A DNA stretch of 64,000 nt, from positions 495,504,001 through 495,568,000 of the forward strand of contig NC_091282.1 in the NCBI RefSeq assembly GCF_032444005.1. The letters run 5' to 3'. The position numbers and the translations under genes are program-made. The notes under the pieces are model-generated. The model saw nothing but the letters and a program-made list of their open reading frames with translations. It did no database searches and was not told the DNA's origin. Position 1 is the stretch's first letter, and each line of letters opens with the position of its first letter. Below, in pieces: positions 8,141 to 21,432 of the stretch. The DNA comes from Ranitomeya imitator. Lineage: Eukaryota.

Positions 8141-8329
8141 TTTTTTTAAACTGCATTGAGCCACATTTTTGTTTTAAGGCCTACTACCTGTGTCTGTCTA
8201 CGCCACTCAATACAGCTGTCCTCCTTTGAAAAAAGCTGAGCGTCAATAGTTTTGTTTTCAGCCTCTAGGAATTTGAAAACTGCATTGGGGCTACTACTTC
8301 GGTAGGGCCTACTAACGGTGTCTGCCGCT

Positions 8330-10112
8330 CCAAGGTGTTCCCCAGGTTTCCTCGCCATTGCTTCGATCTTCTGACTCTCGTTTAGTAGTTGTTGAAAACT
8401 ACACTGCATTAGGCCTACAAATTGGGTCTGGGGTGTAGAGACGGTGTGTTCCACTCCAAGGTGTTCCCCAGGTTTCCTCTCCATTGCTTCAATCTTCTGT
8501 CTCTCGTTTAGTAGTTGTTGAAAACAACACTGCATTCGGCCTACAAGTTGGGTCAGGGGTGTAGATACGGTGTGTTCCACTCCAAGGTGTTCCCCAGGTT
8601 TCCTCTCCATTGCTTCAATCTTCTGGCTCTCGTTTAGTAGTTGTTGAAAACAACACTGCATTCGGCCTACAAGTTGGGTCAGGGGTGTAGAGAAGGTGTG
8701 CTCCACTCCAAGGTGTTCCCCAGGTTGCCTCTCCATTGCTTCAATCTTAAAGCTCTTGTTTAGTAGTTGTTGAAAACAACACTGCATTCGGCCTACAAGT
8801 TGGGTCAGGGGTGTAGAGACGGTGTGTTCCACTCCAAGGTGTTCCCCAGGTTTCCTCTCCATTGCTTCAATCTTCTGGCTCTCGTTTAGTAGTTGTTGAA
8901 AACAACACTGCATTCGGCCTACAAGTTGGGTCAGGGGTGTAGAGACGGTGTGTTCCACTCCAAGGTGTTCCCCAGGTTGCCTCTCCATTGCTTCAATCTT
9001 AAAGCTCTTGTTTAGTAGTTGTTGAAATCAACACTGCATTCGGCCTACAAGTTGGGTCAGGGGTGTAGAGACGGCGTGTTCCACTCCAAGGTGTTCCCCA
9101 GGTTGCCTCTCCATTGCTTCAATCTTAAAGCTCTTGTTTAGTAGTTGTTGAAAACAACACTGCATTCGGCCTACAAGTTGGGTCTGGGGTGTAGAGACGG
9201 TGTGTTCCACTCCAAGGTGTTCCCCAGGTTGCCTCTCCATTGCTTCAATCTTAAAGCTCTTGTTTAGTAGTTGTTGAAAACAACACTGCATTCGGCCTAC
9301 AAGTTGGGTCAGGGGTGTAGAGACGGTGTGTTCCACTCCAAGGTGTTCCCCAGGTTTCCTCTCCATTGCTTCAATCTTCTGGCTCTCGTTTAGTAGTTGT
9401 TGAAAACAACACTGCATTCGGCCTACAAGTTGGGTCAGGGGTGTAGAGAAGGTGTGTTCCACTCCAAGGTGTTCTCCAGGTTGCCTCTCCATTGCTTCAA
9501 TCTTAAAGCTCTTGTTTAGTAGTTGTTGAAAACAACACTGCATTCGGCCTACAAGTTGGGTCAGGGGTGTAGAGACGGTGTGTTCCACTCCAAGGTGTTC
9601 CCCAGGTTGCCTCTCCATTGCTTCAATCTTAAAGCTCTTGTTTAGTAGTTGTTGAAATCAACACTGCATTCGGCCTACAAGTTGGGTCAGGGGTGTAGAG
9701 ACGGCGTGTTCCACTCCAAGGTGTTCCCCAGGTTGCCTCTCCATTGCTTCAATCTTAAAGCTCTTGTTTAGTAGTTGTTGAAAACAACACTGCATTCGGC
9801 CTACAAGTTGGGTCTGGGGTGTAGAGACGGTGTGTTCCACTCCAAGGTGTTCCCCAGGTTGCCTCTCCATTGCTTCGATCTTCTGGCTCTCGTTTAGTAG
9901 TTGTTGAAAACAACACTGCATTCGGCCTACAAGTTGGGTCAGGGATGTAGAGACGGTGTGTTACACTCCAAGGTGTTCCCCAGGTTGCCTCTCCATTGCT
10001 TCAATCTTAAAGCTCTTGTTTAGTAGTTGTTGAAAACAACACTGCATTCGGCCTACAAGTTGGGTCTGGGTTGTAGAGACGGTGTCTTCCGCTCCAAGGT
10101 GTTCTCCAGGTT
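8330..10112. repeat. 126-bp tandem satellite (~14 copies) inside the hAT; interrupted by the Foldback element and resuming at 20001-20140
   Basis: AAAACAACACTGCATTCGGCCTACAAG... recurs with period 126 (8521, 8647). The unit continues in register after 20000. Confidence 0.95.
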
Positions 10113-10916
10113 ACCTGTGTGAAGTTGGCACCCCATGTTCTCAAAAGATGAATAAAAATACACCATTCGTTTGTGCTGCGTTTGTGCTGGTTTGTGCCGC
10201 AAAAATGAACGTTTGTGCCGCTTTGGTTCCAGAGATATTGCGCGTTATATTTTTATGAAGCTCCACCCACTTTCCACCCCATGTTCTTAAATTTTAAAAA
10301 TGAATACACCATTCGTTTGTGCTGCGTTTGTGCTGGTTTGTGCTGCAAAAATAAACGTTTGCACCTCTTTGGTTTCCGAGATATTGTGCGCTCAATTTGC
10401 TGAAACTCCGCCCACTTTCCACCCCATGTTCTTAAATTTTAAAAATGAATACACCATTCGTTTGTGCTGCGTTTGTGCTGGTTTGTGCTGCAAAAATAAA
10501 CGTTTGCACCGCTTTGGTTTCCGAGATATTGTGCGCTCAATTTGCTGAAACTCCGCCCACTTTCCACCCCATGTTCTTAAATTTTAAAAATGAATACACC
10601 ATTCGTTTGTGCTGGTTTGTGCTGCAAAAATAAACGTTTGCACCGCTTTGGTTTCCGAGATATTGTGCGCTCAATTTGCTGAAACTTCGCCCACTTTCCA
10701 CCCCATGTTCTTAAATTTTAAAAATGAATACACCATTCGTTTGTGCTGCGTTTGTGCTGGTTTGTGCTGCAAAAATAAACGTTTGCACCGCTTTGGTGTC
10801 CGAGATATTGTGCGCTCAATTTGCTGAAACTCCGCCCACTTTCCACCCCATGTTCTTAAATTTTAAAAATGAATACACCATTCGTTTGTGCTGCGTTTGT
10901 GCTGGTTTGTGCTGCT
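10113..10916 (+). repeat. Left foldback arm: outer variant unit plus ~4.5 tandem 145-bp units (one with an internal deletion near 10610)
   Basis: Unit GAAACTCCGCCCACTTTCCACCCCATGTTCTTAAATTTTAAAAATGAATACACCATTCG...CTCAATTTGCT, period 145. Confidence 0.92.
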
Positions 10917-11311
10917 TTGGTTTTTGAAATCTCGCACTGAGTTTGTGCCTCAAATCACTGTAACTGATATATGGATAAAGGGAGATAAAAAGAAATGAAA
11001 AACACCGGCTAGCCATAGCAATTTTATAATAAAAAAAAATGTATAAATTGTTCCTTACTAGACCCCATACTTAATTTTGATTTCCTGCTTGTGATGCCCC
11101 TCCCCCACACACTGTAACTTGGGGAAAGGCCTAAGCAAATGTATGCCTAACAATTTGACTACTAGCTGAGAGACTCCCAGGGTAAATCAAGTGTACTTAC
11201 TTATTTGAACTGAAAATGTGCTAAACTGTCTTGGTAGATTTCTGCAAAGCTATTACCTGAGCAAAGAAACTTTAGTTCAATCATGGAGTTGTACTTTTAT
11301 CTGTCTACAAC

Positions 11312-11420
11312 AGTATTTCCCAAGCAGGGTGCCTGCAGGTGTTGCAAAACTACAACTCCCAGCATGACCGGAAAGTCAAAGGCTGTCCGGGTATGCTGGG
11401 GGTTGTAGTTCTCCAACACA
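11312..11420. mobile_element. Short hairpin MITE-like repeat
   Basis: AAACTACAACTCCCAGCATG ... ATGCTGGGGGTTGTAGTT inverted arms, a motif common in frog genomes. Confidence 0.55.
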
Positions 11421-11444
11421 TCAAGTTGTTTGTAATTACAGTAA

Positions 11445-11839
11445 GGGTACCGTCACACAGTGGCATTTTGATCGCTACGACGGCACGATTCGTGACGCTC
11501 CAGCATCGTAACAATATCGCTCCAGCGTCGTAGACTGCTGTCACACTTTGCAATCTACGACGCTGGAGCGATAATTTCATGACGTATGTGCGATGTAGAA
11601 GCCGTTGGTTACTATGCGCACATCGTATACGATATATATGTTACACCATGCGATCATGCCGCCACAGCGGGACACTAGACGACGAAAGAAAGTTTCAAAC
11701 GATCTGCTACGACGTACGATTCTCAGCGGGGTCCCTGATTGCAGGAGCATGTCACACACTACGATATCGTACCTATATCGCTCGAACGTCACGAATCGTG
11801 CCGTCGTAGTGATCAAAATTGCACTGTGTGACGGTACCC
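11445..11839. mobile_element. PIF/Harbinger-type MITE nested inside the Foldback element
   Basis: TIR GGGTACCGTCACACAGTG / CACTGTGTGACGGTACCC with long imperfect arms; TAA duplicated at 11442-11444 and 11840-11842. Confidence 0.85.
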
Positions 11840-12404
11840 TAATGCTTTAGCCCATTAAAAGAGTACTCTGCTGCAAAACTTATCCCCTATCCCACCCCCG
11901 GGGGGGGGGGGGGGGGGGGTTGGGTTTGGTACTGACCACTGGGCCCCCTGCAATCTCCTGCTCCCTGCAATCTCAGTGCTCCCCTGCATGGAGCAATCAC
12001 CGCTGTGTGCAGAGTGACTGCCAACCACAGGGCTTTGCTGTGGCAGGCGCGCCCCCACCATTTATTACTATGGGAGAGGCAGAGATACACAATACACTTT
12101 TCATTTGTAAAAGTAGAGAGAAGTGAGCGTGCTAAGAATAGGATTATTTAATCTCAGTACAGTGATCCCTCAACACATACAATGGCCCCAACATACGATC
12201 ATTTCAACATATGAAGGACTCTGTTGAATGCAGCATCACCTGCTGCTCCAGTATGGTTTTAACATACGATGATTCACCTGGAACTAATTACCATTGTATG
12301 TTGAGGGACCACTGTATCTTAACTATTAAAAATTATGTAATCAATTATTTTCCATATAATACACTGCATGTAAAACTAAAAAAAACATTTTTTGTTTTGA
12401 TCAG

Positions 12405-15400
12405 ATGCCCAGGAAGCCAGCCTGTGACTATGATGACATTATAAATGTCATCTGTTCTTCACATGAAAAAATTATTACAGGACAGGCAATAGCATTCCCC
12501 TCAGAAAAAGTATGGGTAGACTTGTGTCAAAAATTAAATAACAAAATTTCACCAAAAAACCTTTACACGTTTGTAAAGACAAATCGGCACAATGTATGGG
12601 AAGCCCTTGGTCTGTACAAAGATGTTACAAATATCCCAAAACAACCTTCCAACAGTGAGAGCTCAGAAGGAACAGAGAGTCATTCATCAGTTCAGTGCTA
12701 TGACATTCAGTTTGAGTTCAGTCTTTCTTTTCAGAGCTGGATCAAAATTTGGCCTGAAAAAGTAATTTACAATGACAAATCTATGTATGCTGATAAAAGA
12801 GAATACACAATCTTAAAACCTGGTACATGGACTCACATATTGAATGAGGAGATCTGGAAAAATATCAAGTCATCGTGCACACTTAAATTCAGGAGGGCAA
12901 AGGTTTATCCAAATGTTGTATCTAACTACATAGATATAACAGGGTGCTGCACAGAGTGTGATGCACAACTATCCATAAAAGTTGAAGAAATACCAGAGAT
13001 TGCTAAGCCAGTAGTGCTTAAGTGTATGATCTGCAATATTGATGACAGTCTCCACACAGGAAAATCAAAACGTAAATTATCAGGAGATTTAAGAAAAAGG
13101 TTGTCAAAAGAACTCTGGGAAGGACGAAAACAAGCACATGTATGGCGAGCAGCTGAGGCTTATAAAGTTATGGATGTTGGTGACCCTGAGCCTAGCCATC
13201 TACCAAATCTAGCAACGTTAAGAAAAGCCAAGCAAGAGATTGGCGAAAGAGAGTTAATGCACAAGGACCCAATTCTTTCATTACATCTCCTGAAATACAG
13301 TGTTCCTCAGACTGGAAGCATACACAACATTGGTCTAGATAAAAAATTTTTTGCCATTACTGGACCCCGTCTCAGATGCAAGTGTACCAAATAAAGTCAA
13401 AGAACTTGGATTCCTATGTAAGTTTTGATGCAACAGGTTCAGTAGTGAGAAAACTAAAAAGACCTGTTGGCATTTCTGGACACATCTTTTTGTACCAAGG
13501 GGTTTTGTGTTCGAGTGGAGATCATATCCCAGTAGTGCAGATGCTTTCTGAGAGCCATACTATTAATTCTATAGCGCAATGGCTGACAGAATGGAAACAA
13601 GCAGGTGCTACTGTTCCAAAGGAAGCAGTTTGTGATTTCTCCCTCGCTTTGCTTGGAGCTCTAGTTAAGGCTTTCACTCCTTACCCCGACTTGAAGACAT
13701 ATATAAATCAGTGCTTTGGAGTGTTGACCAGGAATGTTGCATCAAAACTACCACCATGCTTTATTAGAATTGATGTTGCGCACTGTATCAAGCTTATTAG
13801 CCGATGGGAATGTCTGAGGCAAGCTGGAAACAGAGTAAGGGAATTCTATCTCAGAGCAATGGCACAACTTCTACAGTCTACATCACTTGATGATGCGAGA
13901 GAACTCATTCATTCAATTTCAGTTGTTGCTTTTAGTGAATCAGAAGGGAATGATGACAGAGGCACACCAGTTTTATCAGAGACTAGCAAAGTTCAACTGA
14001 AGAGACGGATTGCAGAGGGACGTGTTTTACCCACTGTCACTGAAGATGACTATGGAGTAGAGATGAAAGAACAAGAGGATGAGCCAATTCAACCATGCCA
14101 AACAGACCTGAAAATATGGGCAACAGAAATTTGTGAAAGGAGTAAGATGCTTGCAGCAAATCATGGTGACCGAGACAATTTACATTTCCTTCCAGAACTT
14201 GTTCCAAATCTTTTAAGAATGGCATGTTACCTTCCACTTTGGACAGCCATAATGGTTCCACACTTTAAAAGTGTGAACATGACAGCAAGTTCTGCAAATG
14301 TTGAGGCTGAATTTAAGAACATAAAAAATGGACTCTTTAAACATGAATGTCTCCCTATTAGAACCGACCGATTTGTAATTCGTCACCTTGAATTTATGGA
14401 AGGCAAAATGAGACTTTCCTCAGTTCCCATAAAGAAAACCGAAAGCAGTGAAAATATGAGCCAAGACAATGGGCAAAAAAACAGCAACTGTGAGGAGGAT
14501 TCACAAGTTCACATAAAATTGGGTGATGAAAGTAGCTTGCAGGAGCAGCCTGTTGAAAATTGGAAAGGTCTCAGTAGTCCTCCAAAAAAGAGATTGTCCT
14601 ACCTAACCCCATGTTCCGAGTTGCTGCACATGGACACAAAATTTAACCGAAAAAAAAAGGTGAGCATTTTGAAAAATGGTAACCATCTAGCTAAAAAACC
14701 AATACAAGTAAACAAAAAGCTTATAAGTATCATTAATACCTGTGCATTTGATTCATTTTGCCAGTGTCTTTGTTGTGCATTCTGGGACAGTGGATTATTT
14801 TGCAATTATGTCAACAAAGAGAACACCATTGAAATTTTTGAATTGGTGCAGACAATTGTGACAAAGGGAGTTGGAAAGGAAGTTTATACAATGAGGGCTA
14901 AAATACTGTCTGGAATATTTGAATATGTTCAGCTGAAGTCAGGTGTGAGGCAGGTCAATGCTGAGTGTAATGTTGCACACATAATCTCAATGACAATGAG
15001 ACAGGTACCAAGCGTAATAATTAAAACACAGTGTTCTTCTGTGTACAGCAATAGAAATATAGCTAATTCAAGAGCAATCCCTCTTCTGCCAATCAATATA
15101 CATATTTTAGAAACTAATGGACTTGGTAAACTTCAGCTAGCATTGGAAGATGGGCTACACCTAAATGTTTCAAAATGTCTAAAGCCATTAAAGTCACCTC
15201 AAGAGTGTCCAGATGGCTTGAAAATTCAGGATGCATCTTCATTGAAATTCCTTTGCAGTGGTTCGGTCACGCACAGCTGCACCACTGGACAAGTACTTTG
15301 TATTGAAATAAGTGCAGAAACACAGTATACACTGTCCGAAATACCTGTGAACATACATCTGGACAGTCATTCATTTGTGCTACGAGGGGTTGTTGCCTTC

Positions 15401-15562
15401 ATTCCAGGAACTTGCAATATGTCTCTTGGTCATTATGTTGCCTATTGTAGAAGAAAATTTAATGGCTGGGAGAAATATGATGACCTGTGTGACTTTATTA
15501 CAACAGCCTCTGCAAAGACCAAGATACAACCCCATGTTGTGATATTTACAAAGGAGGAGTGA
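12405..15562 (+). CDS. NOF-like Mutator transposase with C-terminal USP-like (papain-fold) protease domain, ~1,050 aa; split by one frameshift at the A6T6 run 13341-13352
   Basis: ORF 12405-13394 joins ORF 13376-15562 through ..GLD(K)xFFCHYWTPSQMQVY. Putative DDE motifs: SFDATGS, VCDFSLAL, RIDVAH (D-x2-H) and SSANVEAEF. C-terminal Cys box INTCAFDS and His box GHYVAYCRR..GWEKYDD. No other stops are visible. Confidence 0.78.
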
Positions 15563-16669
15563 ATATGTGGAGAATCTGTCTCATCATGAGTCCCGTGGCA
15601 AGTCACAGGCTGCAAGATTGTTGTGGAAAGTTTAAAAGTATCCTGGCACCAAACAAAGTGTTAGTAGTGCTTTCCTCTAAGGTTGTTTTGGTGCTTAAAG
15701 TGTATGTTTAAAATAACCTAAAATATGCCTTACCAATATTTTTTTATTCTGTTAACATTTTGTTAATGTGGATTTCCCATTATGATTAAACCGTTTCATG
15801 GTTCTTTAAACAGTTCTGCTGTCTACAAAGTTTCATCTGTTATTGGTAATTCCATTTTTATCTGTGTTTGATTTGCAAAGATTTATTAAGCTCTGAAGGT
15901 CCTGTTTAGTTGGACAGCTATATTAAAATAACAATACTTTTGTTTTGAGCCAGACACAAAATCATGGTCTACCACGGTTTTGAGTCCAGCAAGAAAACCG
16001 CATATGGAGCAAAAATGAGCCAACTAGAGTCACTTGCGGACCCCCGCCAGATCATAGAAATGAATGGAGCGTATGCCCAGTATGCCCAAATGTAATGTTA
16101 ACCCAGCCATATTCACACTGCAATCCAAAGCCATCACACACAAAGTGGTGATGTCTACGGTCATTGCATATTTATGCAAAGATTTTCATAGAAGATGACA
16201 GTCACTTTACATAAACTGGCCAACGTCAAAAGTAATCACAATCTTTTTTTTTCCCTGGAATTCTTTTTATAGTGCAACGTAATTTGGCTAAACAATGTTT
16301 GCTAGGTATAATGGGCTTCAGGGCTGGTGCAAGGGTTTTTGCCACCCTAGGTGAAAGCTAATTTTGCTGCCCCTTGACCCCGCCCATTGGCTCCACCCAT
16401 TAACACGCCCTGCCTTACTACTGGGGTGAAAATAAATGAATGACTACAACCAATGGCACTCGTGCTTAGCTGTAGAGGTTATAAATCCAGGAGTAACCTG
16501 ACCTTGTTCCTCAGTGATGGTGCAAACTCTTTACTAGTCTGCGGTTCCCTCCAGGGTGAATGGTCTGGTGTCACGAATATGGTGGAAGCCGAAACTATCC
16601 CCACTCAATAGGTGAGAGTGTCAACTAATGCTGCTCAGGCAGTAACCTCGACTCTGCATAATGAAATGT

Positions 16670-18825
16670 AAACAGACATTAGCCGACACAGAATGCCGAC
16701 CCCTGGCTTATGGCATCACTATGACATCGCTGGAGGTAGCAGAGATGTATATACAGACATTAGCCCCCACAGAATGCCGACCCCTGGCTTATGACATCAC
16801 TATGACATCGCTGGAGATAGCAGAGATGTATATACAGACATTAGCCCCCACAGAATGCCGACCCCTGGCTTATGACATCACTATGACATCGCTGGAGGTA
16901 GCAGAGATGTATATACAGACATTAGCCCCCACAGAATGCCGACCCCTGGCTTATGACATCACTATGACATCGCTGGAGGTAGCAGAGATGTATATACAGA
17001 CATTAGCCCCCACAGAATGCCGACCCCTGGCTTATGACATCACTATGACATCGCTGGAGATAGCAGAGATGTATATACAGACATTAGCCCCCACAGAATG
17101 CCGACCCCTGGCTTATGACATCACTATGACATCGGTGGAGGTAGCAGAGATGTATATACAGACATTAGCCCCCACAGAATGCCGACCCCTGGCTTATGAC
17201 ATCACTATGACATCGCTGGAGATAGCAGAGATGTATATACAGACATTAGCCCCCACAGAATGCCGACCCCTGGCTTATGACATCACTATGACATCGCTGG
17301 AGATAGCAGAGATGTATATACAGACATTAGCCCCCACAGAATGCCGACCCCTGGCTTATGACATCACTATGACATCGCTGGAGGTAGCAGAGATGTATAT
17401 ACAGACATTAGCCCCCACAGAATGCCGACCCCTGGCTTATGACATCACTATGACATCGCTGGAGGTAGCAGAGATGTATATACAGACATTAGCCCCCACA
17501 GAATGCCGACCCCTGGCTTATGGCATCACTATGACATCGCTGGAGGTAGCAGAGATGTATATACAGACATTAGCCCCCACAGAATGCCGACCCCTGGCTT
17601 ATGACATCACTATGACATCGCTGGAGGTAGCAGAGATGTATATACAGACATTAGCCCCCACAGAATGCCGACCCCTGGCTTATGACATCACTATGACATC
17701 GCTGGAGGTAGCAGAGATGTATATACAGACATTAGCCCCCACAGAATGCCGACCCCTGGCTTATGACATCACTATGACATCGCTGGAGATAGCAGAGATG
17801 TATATACAGACATTAGCCCCCACAGAATGCCGACCCCTGGCTTATGGCATCACTATGACATCGCTGGAGGTAGCAGAGATGTATATACAGACATTAGCCC
17901 CCACAGAATGCCGACCCCTGGCTTATGACATCACTATGACATCGCTGGAGGTAGCAGAGATGTATATACAGACATTAGCCCCCACAGAATGCCGACCCCT
18001 GGCTTATGACATCACTATGACATCGCTGGAGGTAGCAGAGATGTATATACAGACATTAGCCCCCACAGAATGCCGACCCCTGGCTTATGACATCACTATG
18101 ACATCGCTGGAGGTAGCAGAGATGTATATACAGACATTAGCCCCCACAGAATGCCGACCCCTGGCTTATGACATCACTATGACATCGCTGGAGATAGCAG
18201 AGATGTATATACAGACATTAGCCCCCACAGAATGCCGACCCCTGGCTTATGGCATCACTATGACATCGCTGGAGGTAGCAGAGATGTATATACAGACATT
18301 AGCCCCCACAGAATGCCGACCCCTGGCTTATGACATCACTATGACATCGCTGGAGATAGCAGAGATGTATATACAGACATTAGCCCCCACAGAATGCCGA
18401 CCCCTGGCTTATGACATCACTATGACATCGCTGGAGGTAGCAGAGATGTATATACAGACATTAGCCCCCACAGAATGCCGACCCCTGGCTTATGGCATCA
18501 CTATGACATCGCTGGAGGTAGCAGAGATGTATATACAGACATTAGCCCCCACAGAATGCCGACCCCTGGCTTATGACATCACTATGACATCGCTGGAGGT
18601 AGCAGAGATGTATATACAGACATTAGCCCCCACAGAATGCCGACCCCTGGCTTATGACATCACTATGACATCGCTGGAGGCGGAGTTACAACTCAGGTAG
18701 CAGAGATGTACATACAGACATTAGCCCCCACAGAATGCCGACCCCTGGCTTATGACATCACTATGACATCGCTGGAGGCGGAGTTACAACTCGGGTAGCA
18801 GAGATGTACATACAGACATTACCTC
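16670..18825. repeat. 81-bp minisatellite (~26 copies) abutting the right foldback arm; open in one frame (27-aa repeat ORF 16661-18700)
   Basis: GCAGAGATGTATATACAGACATTAGCCCCCACAG...CGCTGGAGGTA, period 81 (16741, 16822). Confidence 0.95.
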
Positions 18826-18833
18826 CTCTGCCA

Positions 18834-20000
18834 GGAGTTTCAGCAAATTGAGCGCACAACATCTCGGAAACCAAAGCGGTGCAAACGTTTATTTTTGCAG
18901 CACAAACCAGCACAAACGCAGCACAAACGAATGGTGTATTCATTTTTAAAATTTAAGAACATGGGGTGGAAAGTGGGCGGAGTTTCAGCAAATTGAGCGC
19001 ACAACATCTCGGAAACCAAGGCGGTGCAAACGTTTATTTTTGCAGCACAAACCAGCACAAACGCAGCACAAACGAATGGTGTATTCATTTTTAAAATTTA
19101 AGAACATGGGGTGGAAAGTGGGCGGAGTTTCAGCAAATTGAGCGCACAATATCTCGGAAACCAAAGCGGTGCAAACGTTTATTTTTGCAGCACAAACCAG
19201 CACAAACGCAGCACAAACGAATGGTGTATTCATTTTTAAAATTTAAGAACATGGGGTGGAAAGTGGGCGGAGTTTCAGCAAATTGAGCGCACAATATCTC
19301 GGAAACCAAAGCGGTGCAAACGTTTATTTTTGCAGCACAAACCAGCACAAACGCAGCACAAACGAATGGTGTATTCATTTTTAAAATTTAAGAACATGGG
19401 GTGGAAAGTGGGCGGAGTTTCAGCAAATTGAGCGCACAACATCTCGGAAACCAAAGCGGTGCAAACGTTTATTTTTGCAGCACAAACCAGCACAAACGCA
19501 GCACAAACGAATGGTGTATTCATTTTTAAAATTTAAGAACATGGGGTGGAAAGTGGGCGGAGTTTCAGCAAATTGAGCGCACAATATCTCGGAAACCAAA
19601 GCGGTGCAAACGTTTATTTTTGCAGCACAAACCAGCACAAACGCAGCACAAACGAATGGTGTATTCATTTTTAAAATTTAAGAACATGGGGTGGAAAGTG
19701 GGCGGAGTTTCAGCAAATTGAGCGCACAATATCTCGGAAACCAAAGCGGTGCAAACGTTTATTTTTGCAGCACAAACCAGCACAAACGCAGCACAAACGA
19801 ATGGTGTATTCATTTTTAAAATTTAAGAACATGGGGTGGAAAGTGGGTGGAGCTTCATAAAAATATAACGCGCAATATCTCTGGAACCAAAGCGGCACAA
19901 ACGTTCATTTTTGCGGCACAAACCAGCACAAACGCAGCACAAACGAATGGTGTATTTTTATTCATCTTTTGAGAACATGGGGTGCCAACTTCACACAGGT
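18834..20000 (-). repeat. Right foldback arm: ~8 tandem 145-bp units inverted relative to the left arm
   Basis: Reverse complement of the left-arm unit; six-frame ORFs recur every 145 bp on the - strand. Confidence 0.93.
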
Positions 20001-21432
20001 CTCCAGGTTTCCTCTCCATAGCTTCAATCTTCATGCTCGTCTTAAGTAGTTGTTGAAACAACACTACATTAGGCCTACAAGTTGGGTCTGGGTCGTAGAG
20101 ACGTTGTCTGCCGCTCCAAGGTGTTCTCCAGGTTGCCACTTAATCGAAGCTGCATAGAGCTTATTTTGTAATTTTACGCCTACAAAGTCTTTCTGCGGTC
20201 CCTCCTTCCAATTGTCCTCCACTGAGCACAACAATGCAGAACGTGTACCCATGTAACCTTTTTTAAACCAGCGTCGAGCCAACTTTGTGGTTTAAGGCCT
20301 ACTTGTAGTGTCTGGCTGCGCCACTCAATACAGCTGTCCTCTTTACAAAAAATGACCTACAATTATCTGGTTTTCAGCCTATCCGGATTTTAAAACTGCA
20401 GTGGGCCTACTAGTTGGGTTGGGGCCTTCTATCTGTGTCTGCCGCTCCTTGCTGTTCTCCTACAGTGAACAAAGCTGTGCCGCCTGTTTACTACTCCTGC
20501 CAATTTTGAACTGCATTTAGACTACTTACAGATTTGGGCCTACTCTCTGTGTCAGCCTCTCATTCCAGTTGTCCTCCACTGAACAAAACAATGCCCCCTG
20601 GTTAGTCCTGTTACCAATTTTGAACTGCATTTAGCCCACTTTAGTCTTTGGGCCTATATCTGTGTTTCCTCCTCATCCTGCCCATTGCCCAGCCAGTGAT
20701 AGATGAGTCTGCTGGTACATTGACCCATAACGCAACATTCCCCGTGCACGCTACACTGCAAGATTGTGACCCTGCTGAAAGTCAGGTCCCCCTTCCCGCA
20801 TACCATACCACCTTACGCGGGGACAAAGAGGAAGGTGCAGATGAAGGTGCAGGTTCCTTCATCAGGTGGGGGGAGGAATACTCGTTGGCGACGTCACTGG
20901 CACAGGGCCCCTCATAGTACGCAAAAGTGTTGCTGCCGGAGGGAGGCGCCCCCGCCGTGCAAACACACCGCTGTATTTTGAGGGGCCCTGTGCCAGTGCC
21001 AATGCCAACGAGGGGGCCCCCCCTGCTTGCTCAGGATCACAGCACTTGCAAAGTTGAAATACTTACCTCTCCCTGCTCCACTGCCGTGACGTGGTCCAGA
21101 TGTCCTGGGCCCACTAATTGCTTGAACCAGCCCTACCCCCCACAACTTTAGCCAAATGACCCCCAATTTCAAATGCCTTACAATTATTATAAGCTAAATT
21201 ACGATTGACAAGCTTCAGTAGCAAGAATGGATGTTTTTGCCAATACAATGGGCTCTGTACATGTTTTCCTGGCCTCTACACACTGCCGACTATGCTCCCC
21301 CATTGACTTGCATTGGGTTTTGTGTTTCGGTCGATCCCCGACTTTTCGCGATAATCGGCCGATTCCACTCGACTCGACTTTTGAGATAGTCGGGTTTCGC
21401 GAAACCCGGCTCGACTCTAAAAAGGTCAAGGT

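Follow-up and report, generated by a model that had tools for sequence, protein, structure and literature searches.

The stretch of DNA analysed here (the window) comprises 64,000 nucleotides from Ranitomeya imitator and carries, at positions 10113-20000, a Foldback-type element that is complete and 9,888 bp long. The transposase gene of this element is read in the window as two open reading frames (ORF1 and ORF2; Table 1), the 3' end of the former overlapping the start of the latter in a different frame. ORF2 encodes the DDE catalytic core of the transposase and, downstream of a linker, a C-terminal domain that resembles the ubiquitin-specific proteases (USPs; peptidase family C19). We consider it probable that the element is a complete NOF-type transposon with one gene product of ~1,050 amino acids (aa), made up of an N-terminal region, a DDE core and a C-terminus of ~300 aa with a USP fold. 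An initial annotation, made from the sequence alone, had described a USP-like deubiquitinase domain fused to the transposase of a Mutator-related element, and had taken three putative catalytic residues in it to be intact. The fusion is borne out, as the USP domain and the DDE core share one reading frame, and all three residues are indeed present in the window copy.

The two arms of the element are 98-99% complementary to each other by inverted-repeat and tandem-repeat scans, and a 9-bp target-site duplication (TSD) together with long arms containing subrepeats is what is found in Mutator/Foldback elements, for which TSDs of 9-11 bp are expected. In the transposase core, alignment A1 shows D133 to be invariant and D18 and E310 to be conserved to at least 90%, and the columns of all three residues are invariant in the transposase alignment A3. 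An AlphaFold2 (AF2) model of the first 717 aa of the homologue P0003, with a predicted local distance difference test score (pLDDT) of 79.9, was used in a fold search; its best match was the ISCth4 transposase of the IS256 family (E 2e-4, probability 1.0), followed by the Drosophila P-element transposase, RAG1 and Hermes. The IS256 family is the bacterial kin of Mutator. The window protein gave no match at E <=1 to the Pfam transposase families, and a profile search of the PDB with the transposase part gave no match. We assign the element to the NOF/Foldback group because of its transposase fold, its 9-bp TSD and its Foldback arms; the assignment is based on fold, TSD, the structure of the terminal inverted repeats and the names that public sources give to relatives, with no Pfam match to Mutator-like elements (MULEs). 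The initial annotation was thus right to place the element near Mutator, and its identity as a Mutator-related DNA transposon of the Foldback/NOF type is supported.

Table 1. Positions in the window of the element, its gene and the sites discussed in the text.
Feature	Positions	Strand	Remarks
ORF1: N-terminal ~315 transposase residues, then out-of-frame tail and stop	12405..13394	+	329 codons
A6T6 homopolymer run, site of the frame break	13341..13352	+	frame 0 before, frame 2 after
ORF2: DDE core, linker and USP-like domain in one frame	13376..15562	+	728 aa
DDE catalytic core	13427..14305	+	D18 (13427-13429), D133 (13772-13774), E310 (14303-14305)
ENW[RK]G motif and basic KKR(K) patch, nuclear-localisation-like	14552..14656	+	ahead of the folded domain
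Predicted USP (peptidase C19-like) fold domain	14657..15559	+	model residues 31-36 to 336 align to USPs
Candidate catalytic Cys456 (NTCAFDS)	14741..14743	+	N-terminus of central helix
Four-Cys zinc-ribbon positions ('fingers')	15032..15256	+	each at least 90% conserved in alignment A4 (60 family domains)
Zinc-ribbon ligands	Cys553 15032-15034; Ser558 15047-15049; Cys601 15176-15178; Cys627 15254-15256	+	
Candidate catalytic His686 (GHYVAY)	15431..15433	+	
Candidate third triad residue Asp702 (W..YDD)	15479..15481	+	Asp/Asn in the family
Left 9-bp TSD (CTCCAGGTT)	10104..10112	.	same 9-mer abuts both inverted-repeat ends
Left Foldback-type terminal inverted repeat arm, 803 bp	10113..10915	.	145-bp tandem subrepeats, 5.5 copies
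Internal 81-bp tandem array, ~25 copies, 98% alike	16672..18821	.	between gene and right arm
Right Foldback-type inverted repeat arm, 1,167 bp	18834..20000	.	145-bp subrepeats, ~8 copies
Right 9-bp TSD (CTCCAGGTT again)	20001..20009	.	perfect match to left

Fold and motifs of the C-terminal domain

The two strings by which the initial annotation had recognised the domain both occur in ORF2, the Cys-box string at 14732-14770 and the His-box string at 15428-15484. The spacing of about 260 aa that it gave between the two boxes needs correction, the measured distance being 230 residues, and its domain start of 14600 was close without being exact, as a conserved unit begins at 14552, with the motif ENWKG, and the folded domain at about 14657. 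The Cys-box motif NTCAFDS aligns with NTCYMNS of USP8, and GHYVAY...W..YDD aligns with the His boxes of USP8, USP4 and USP2; the Asp or Asn expected in USPs at 15-17 residues beyond the His is likewise present.

When the window protein was used alone, the matches to UCH or USP entries in Pfam, NCBIfam and a phmmer search of the PDB were all sub-threshold; in the single-sequence PDB search with the window domain, for example, USP8 was matched at E 0.035. Three of 22 family members matched Pfam UCH at E <=0.01 (best 2.8e-6), and a precomputed Pfam label PF00443 is present on the relative P0017. Measured against the Pfam UCH model, the domain appears as a divergent outlier. A family profile (A2), consisting of 17 domains, matched ~35 USP chains in the PDB (best E 8e-6), with no other chain below E 0.1, and in these matches the Cys box and the His box are collinear. 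For the window domain, AF2 gave a model with a pLDDT of 86.8 and a predicted template modelling (TM) score of 0.82. With this model as query, all of the top 50 Foldseek matches were USPs (best E 5e-11), and VIA-align superposed USP30 over 238 residues at 3.5 Å (Z 18.9), with USP46, USP12, USPL1, USP35, USP2, USP21, Ubp8 and CYLD at Z 15.7-17.4; 450 chains were matched at Z >=8, with the USP fold throughout among the matches listed. In the secondary structure of the model, the central helix (64-79) begins with the Cys, the His is at the beginning of a strand (294-300) and the Asp comes just after the next one (306-309), which in the model is the papain/USP arrangement of the three residues. As the family profile and the model both match USPs, the motif resemblance is more than chance, and the C-terminal domain has, by profile and model, a genuine if divergent USP fold, in agreement with the initial annotation.

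The cellular USPs, among them USP30, USP46/USP12, USP2, USP8, CYLD and USPL1, share with the window domain the fingers-palm-thumb fold, both boxes and the zinc ribbon, but are only 11-17% identical to it. In the Cys box, the window domain has Asp where most USPs have Asn; CYLD likewise has Asp at this position.

Ahead of the folded domain, the E, W and G of the ENW[RK]G motif are invariant or nearly so from fish to insects, in a region that has low pLDDT and is predicted to be disordered. Together with the KKRK patch, this region could be a nuclear import signal, or could make contact with the protease or with DNA. In many insect members (P0039, P0028 and P0055 among them) the Pfam family Znf_SCAND3 (PF23663, E 1e-6 to 5e-9) was found directly before the USP domain; it had no Pfam match in the window protein, nor in the other members of alignment A1 bar one. 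Self-cleavage at a Gly-Gly was considered and rejected: no Gly-Gly is conserved upstream of the domain in alignment A1, in which ENW[RK]G is the one conserved part of the linker, no systematic scan for Gly-Gly having been made.

Conservation of the fusion and state of the window copy

A protein search with ORF2 returned 116 relatives. The closest, P0001, is 70% identical, and P0002-P0007 are 47-54% identical, P0006 being from the goby Knipowitschia caucasica; three teleost-named proteins (P0013, P0014 and P0016) align over about a third to half of the query at 49-58% identity. At 26-38% identity there are more-distant relatives in aphids, a firefly, thrips, an ant, a gall midge, a fruit fly relative and a stick insect. 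Several relatives are named in their sources as 'NOF-FB transposable element' or '120.7 kDa protein in NOF-FB transposable element'. We found both transposase and USP in 143 of the 277 proteins fetched, in the order transposase-then-USP in every case (143/143), and among proteins of at least 900 aa both domains are present in 60 of 61.

The triad of Cys, His and Asp or Asn is intact in 151 (96%) of the 157 fetched domains that span both boxes. By residue, Cys is present in 153 and His in 154, and the third position is Asp in 112 and Asn in 45 (157/157). In an alignment of 60 diverse domains (A4), the sole invariant columns are those of the catalytic Cys, an Asp at +3 from it, one Arg and the catalytic His. 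A comparison of dN/dS, which the initial annotation had proposed as a check, was carried out against the 70% identical relative on contig L001, and gave 0.23 for the USP domain and 0.14 for the transposase core (dS ~0.9), values that indicate purifying selection on the USP domain. Between the window clade and distant members, identity is 36% for the transposase, 27% for the USP domain and 6% for the linker. An exhaustive profile search recovered 3,631 clusters at E <=1e-3, 486 of them at E <=1e-30. Given the conservation of the triad, the constancy of the fusion, the dN/dS and the 3,631 clusters, the domain is an old and selected module and not, as the initial annotation had called it, a passenger; judged by the sequences compared, it is an ancient and constant C-terminal module of the whole NOF-type transposase family in fish and insects.

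Full-length relatives have one ORF of 1,000-1,100 aa, in which an ORF1-like start runs straight into ORF2. The start of ORF1 in the window (MPRKP) resembles that of full-length homologues (MPRPP or MPKKP), and its alignment with homologues extends to GLDK. At the frame break, contigs from two public DNA runs labelled with different organisms (X1 with organism A, which is probably the source species, and X4 with organism B) are two letters shorter at 13341 and carry T in place of A at 13346, and they read an unbroken GLDKFFCHYW, as do all homologues. Codon 558, which specifies the second zinc ligand, is Ser in the window and Cys in contigs of runs X1, X3 and X4, and at three further codons the window residue is the odd one out in comparison with the contigs. 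The window copy either is a slightly decayed member of a family whose usual form has an open frame or contains a homopolymer that was mis-assembled. Judging by its frames, the window copy as assembled cannot give rise to the full protein, as the frameshift parts the first ~315 residues from the rest.

Near-identical copies of positions 12400-15600 (0.64-0.93 of sampled 31-mers) were detected in runs of six organism labels from 11 studies, and one contig of organism B differs from the window at 14 of 3,201 bases. Such near-identity across organisms implies that the species are very closely related or that there was recent spread among them. The mean word depths, ~100-390, are suggestive of a high copy number.

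The insertion site of the element lies within an array of a 126-bp satellite (8315-10116; 14 copies, 95% alike), which restarts from 20001. Long ORFs over this satellite, such as that at 9028-9618, are repeat artefacts, and the internal 81-bp array likewise yields a spurious ORF of 679 aa (16661-18700). The 81-bp array itself might be an expanded internal repeat, or might provide extra binding sites.

Putative activity of the domain and rival explanations

From sequence and predicted structure, we think it rather likely that the domain is catalytically active as a thiol isopeptidase and takes off ubiquitin or a ubiquitin-like modifier (Ubl). Such an isopeptidase would act with the transposase, in cis or nearby. 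Its most likely role would be to remove ubiquitin from the transposase or the transpososome, so that these escape ubiquitin-dependent degradation, which is the same role as has been proposed for the deubiquitinases of the VTD type in Helitrons (PMC9741609). Alternatively, it may strip ubiquitin or Ubl marks from chromatin or from repair factors at the site of excision or insertion, as the authors of the Ginger paper suggested for Ulp1 and OTU domains (PMC2836005). The basic patch ahead of the domain would probably serve for nuclear import.

Several observations weigh against a functional isopeptidase of this kind. The window copy is frameshifted and lacks one zinc ligand, and among the public runs no run recorded as RNA contains the stretch, to regard X3 as RNA being a guess. 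The match of the window protein to Pfam UCH (PF00443) has an E of 0.004, and its 17.2 bits lie below the cut-off of 23.9. Unlike cellular USPs, the domain does not have the canonical oxyanion-hole Asn at position -5 from the Cys, where Ser, Leu, Ile or Thr is found instead; in USP7, USP2 and USP14 the oxyanion hole is formed by the Asn five residues before the Cys. A conserved LKNGN motif ~24 residues upstream of the Cys might supply this Asn. Between LKNGN and the Cys box there is a hairpin of ~17 residues (model strands 51-53 and 56-61) which is extra in comparison with cellular USPs, and the active-site entrance is therefore predicted to be unlike that of textbook USPs. In addition, the pseudo-enzymes PAN2 and USP39 and the SUMO protease USPL1 score nearly as high as true deubiquitinases. 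Because of these departures from textbook USPs, and the near-equal scores of pseudo-enzymes and USPL1, we only infer the activity and the substrate of the domain.

The same features bear on a different explanation, in which the USP fold would serve as a non-catalytic module, similar to PAN2 or USP39, that binds ubiquitin or a Ubl or acts as a scaffold, and so tethers the transposase to a host complex or to chromatin that carries ubiquitin. PAN2 (Z 16.3 and 15.6) and the USP39 chain of the tri-snRNP (Z 15.4) are among the structural matches, and both the unconserved oxyanion Asn position and the sub-threshold score with Pfam UCH would fit such a module. However, the known USP pseudo-enzymes have lost triad residues, whereas the Cys and His of this family are invariant in 60 diverse members, and the retention of the triad in 96% of 157 domains would be difficult to account for if the domain were not catalytic; we regard a purely non-catalytic module as unlikely. 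We likewise hold it to be rather improbable that the domain is an active protease for a Ubl (SUMO, ISG15, NEDD8 or FUBI) and not for ubiquitin, which would make it a functional match to the Ulp1 of other Mutator-like elements. The highest Z scores are those of the ubiquitin-specific USP30, USP46 and USP12, though differences of 1-2 Z units do not discriminate, and USPL1 (SUMO; Z 17.0), USP18 (ISG15; best Foldseek E 5e-11) and USP36-Fubi are also among the closest structures. Ulp1, a SUMO protease, is moreover the usual partner of MULE transposases (PMC2836005).

As MULEs frequently capture fragments of host genes (PMC8277862), the domain could in principle be a Pack-MULE-like fragment acquired by the window element, with no role in transposition. 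This is very improbable: in all full-length relatives, whether from teleosts, aphids, beetles or ants, the USP domain lies in the reading frame of the transposase, and the domain evolves under purifying selection and forms its own large clade of 3,631 clusters. We therefore rejected a captured host fragment in the window copy on the grounds of the family-wide fusion and the dN/dS. Capture long ago, at the root of the family, is possible, but is a separate matter from capture by a single copy. There is, last, hardly any likelihood that the motifs are a chance resemblance in a domain that is not a USP: the single-sequence scores are weak (E 0.004-0.04), but profile, model, Foldseek and VIA-align agree on a USP fold over ~240-270 aligned residues, and these concordant profile and structure matches contradict it.

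Relation to C14orf28 and to known transposon-borne proteases

When the window domain was compared with the ESM-Atlas by features, the first match was a chordate cluster named 'Chromosome 14 open reading frame 28' (C14orf28; 331 aa; 0.96, 189/256 features). The same cluster was again first (0.95, 184/256) for a relative that is only 30% identical, and the first UCH-annotated cluster scored 0.91-0.92 with 147-158 features. By shape, C14orf28 was also first, with a TM score of 0.66/0.67 over 272 residues, canonical USP clusters scoring 0.58-0.61. C14orf28 has lately, and independently, been identified as a papain fold of the USP-like type with its catalytic residues retained (PMC10318531, PMC9992864). 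It was absent from two word-indexed searches with the family profile (the second to E 10), which returned transposon fragments only, and among the best 150 of 3,631 clusters in the exhaustive profile search, all of transposon type, there was no C14orf28. No paper naming both C14orf28 and transposon or transposition terms was found in the literature searched.

C14orf28, also known as DRIP1, is a free-standing host gene of ~310-331 aa without a transposase, and its likeness to the NOF domain is one of Atlas features and shape. Because the module occurs in insects and vertebrates, while the C14orf28 cluster is chordate, domestication is plausible. We put forward as a tentative idea, with the chances leaning somewhat against it, that C14orf28/DRIP1 is a domesticated NOF USP module, and that NOF elements carry a distinct and catalytically competent deubiquitinase subfamily which seeded host genes. 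If this link is true, an uncharacterised vertebrate gene known as a 'dopamine-receptor-interacting protein' would gain both an evolutionary origin and a biochemical function open to testing. Two Basidiomycota-dominated Atlas clusters (333 and 335 aa) scored next after C14orf28 (0.94-0.95); this suggests that relatives of the NOF USP subtype occur in fungi, perhaps on mobile elements too.

Proteases of other kinds have already been described in mobile DNA: MULEs carry Ulp1, Helitrons carry OTU, Ginger1 has both of these, and Helentrons carry VTD (PMC2836005, PMC9741609). The VTDs of Helitrons have been shown to be active, and are proposed to protect transposition proteins from degradation (PMC9741609). 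The recurrence of Ulp1, OTU and VTD across unrelated classes of element suggests that escape from ubiquitin-dependent control by the host is a general need of mobile DNA. With the domain considered here, the USPs, which are the largest class of deubiquitinases, would join this list as a fixed part of the transposase in thousands of clusters from fish, frog and many insect orders. As one polypeptide with a single Cys to mutate, the fusion would be a clean system in which to study the role of deubiquitination in cut-and-paste transposition. We did not find a USP-type domain described in NOF/Foldback transposases in the literature searched, most subscription journals and Repbase Reports lying outside the search. 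The only fusion of C19 with a transposase found in the searchable literature is a Trichomonas vaginalis protein, mentioned in one sentence of the Ginger paper, that joins a transposase_11 domain (IS5-like) to a Peptidase C19 domain (PMC2836005). That fusion belongs to the IS5/PIF-like superfamily and is a single protist protein, whereas the NOF-USP fusion is a family-wide feature in animals.

Among the closest known systems is Drosophila FB-NOF (DNA/MULE-NOF in RepeatMasker/Dfam), which shares with the window element the long arms with subrepeats, the 9-bp TSD and one ORF of ~1,050 aa; the link to the Drosophila NOF 120.7 kDa protein is through the names that public sources give to relatives, and the window element differs in that it sits in a vertebrate genome. 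The Ulp1 (C48) domains of KAONASHI/VANDAL elements, of melon and rice MULEs and of Ginger1 are also clan CA Ubl proteases within, or fused to, a DDE transposase (PMC2836005). Ulp1/C48 is, however, another family and fold subtype than USP/C19, and plant MULEs often have it as a gene of its own or as a captured one, not as a constant C-terminal module. The OTU and VTD domains of Helitrons and Helentrons are, like the NOF-USP domain, transposon-borne deubiquitinases or candidates for such, with conserved catalytic residues (PMC9741609); they are carried by rolling-circle elements with a RepHel protein and have OTU or VTD folds, whereas in NOF-USP a DDE transposase is joined to a domain with a predicted USP fold.

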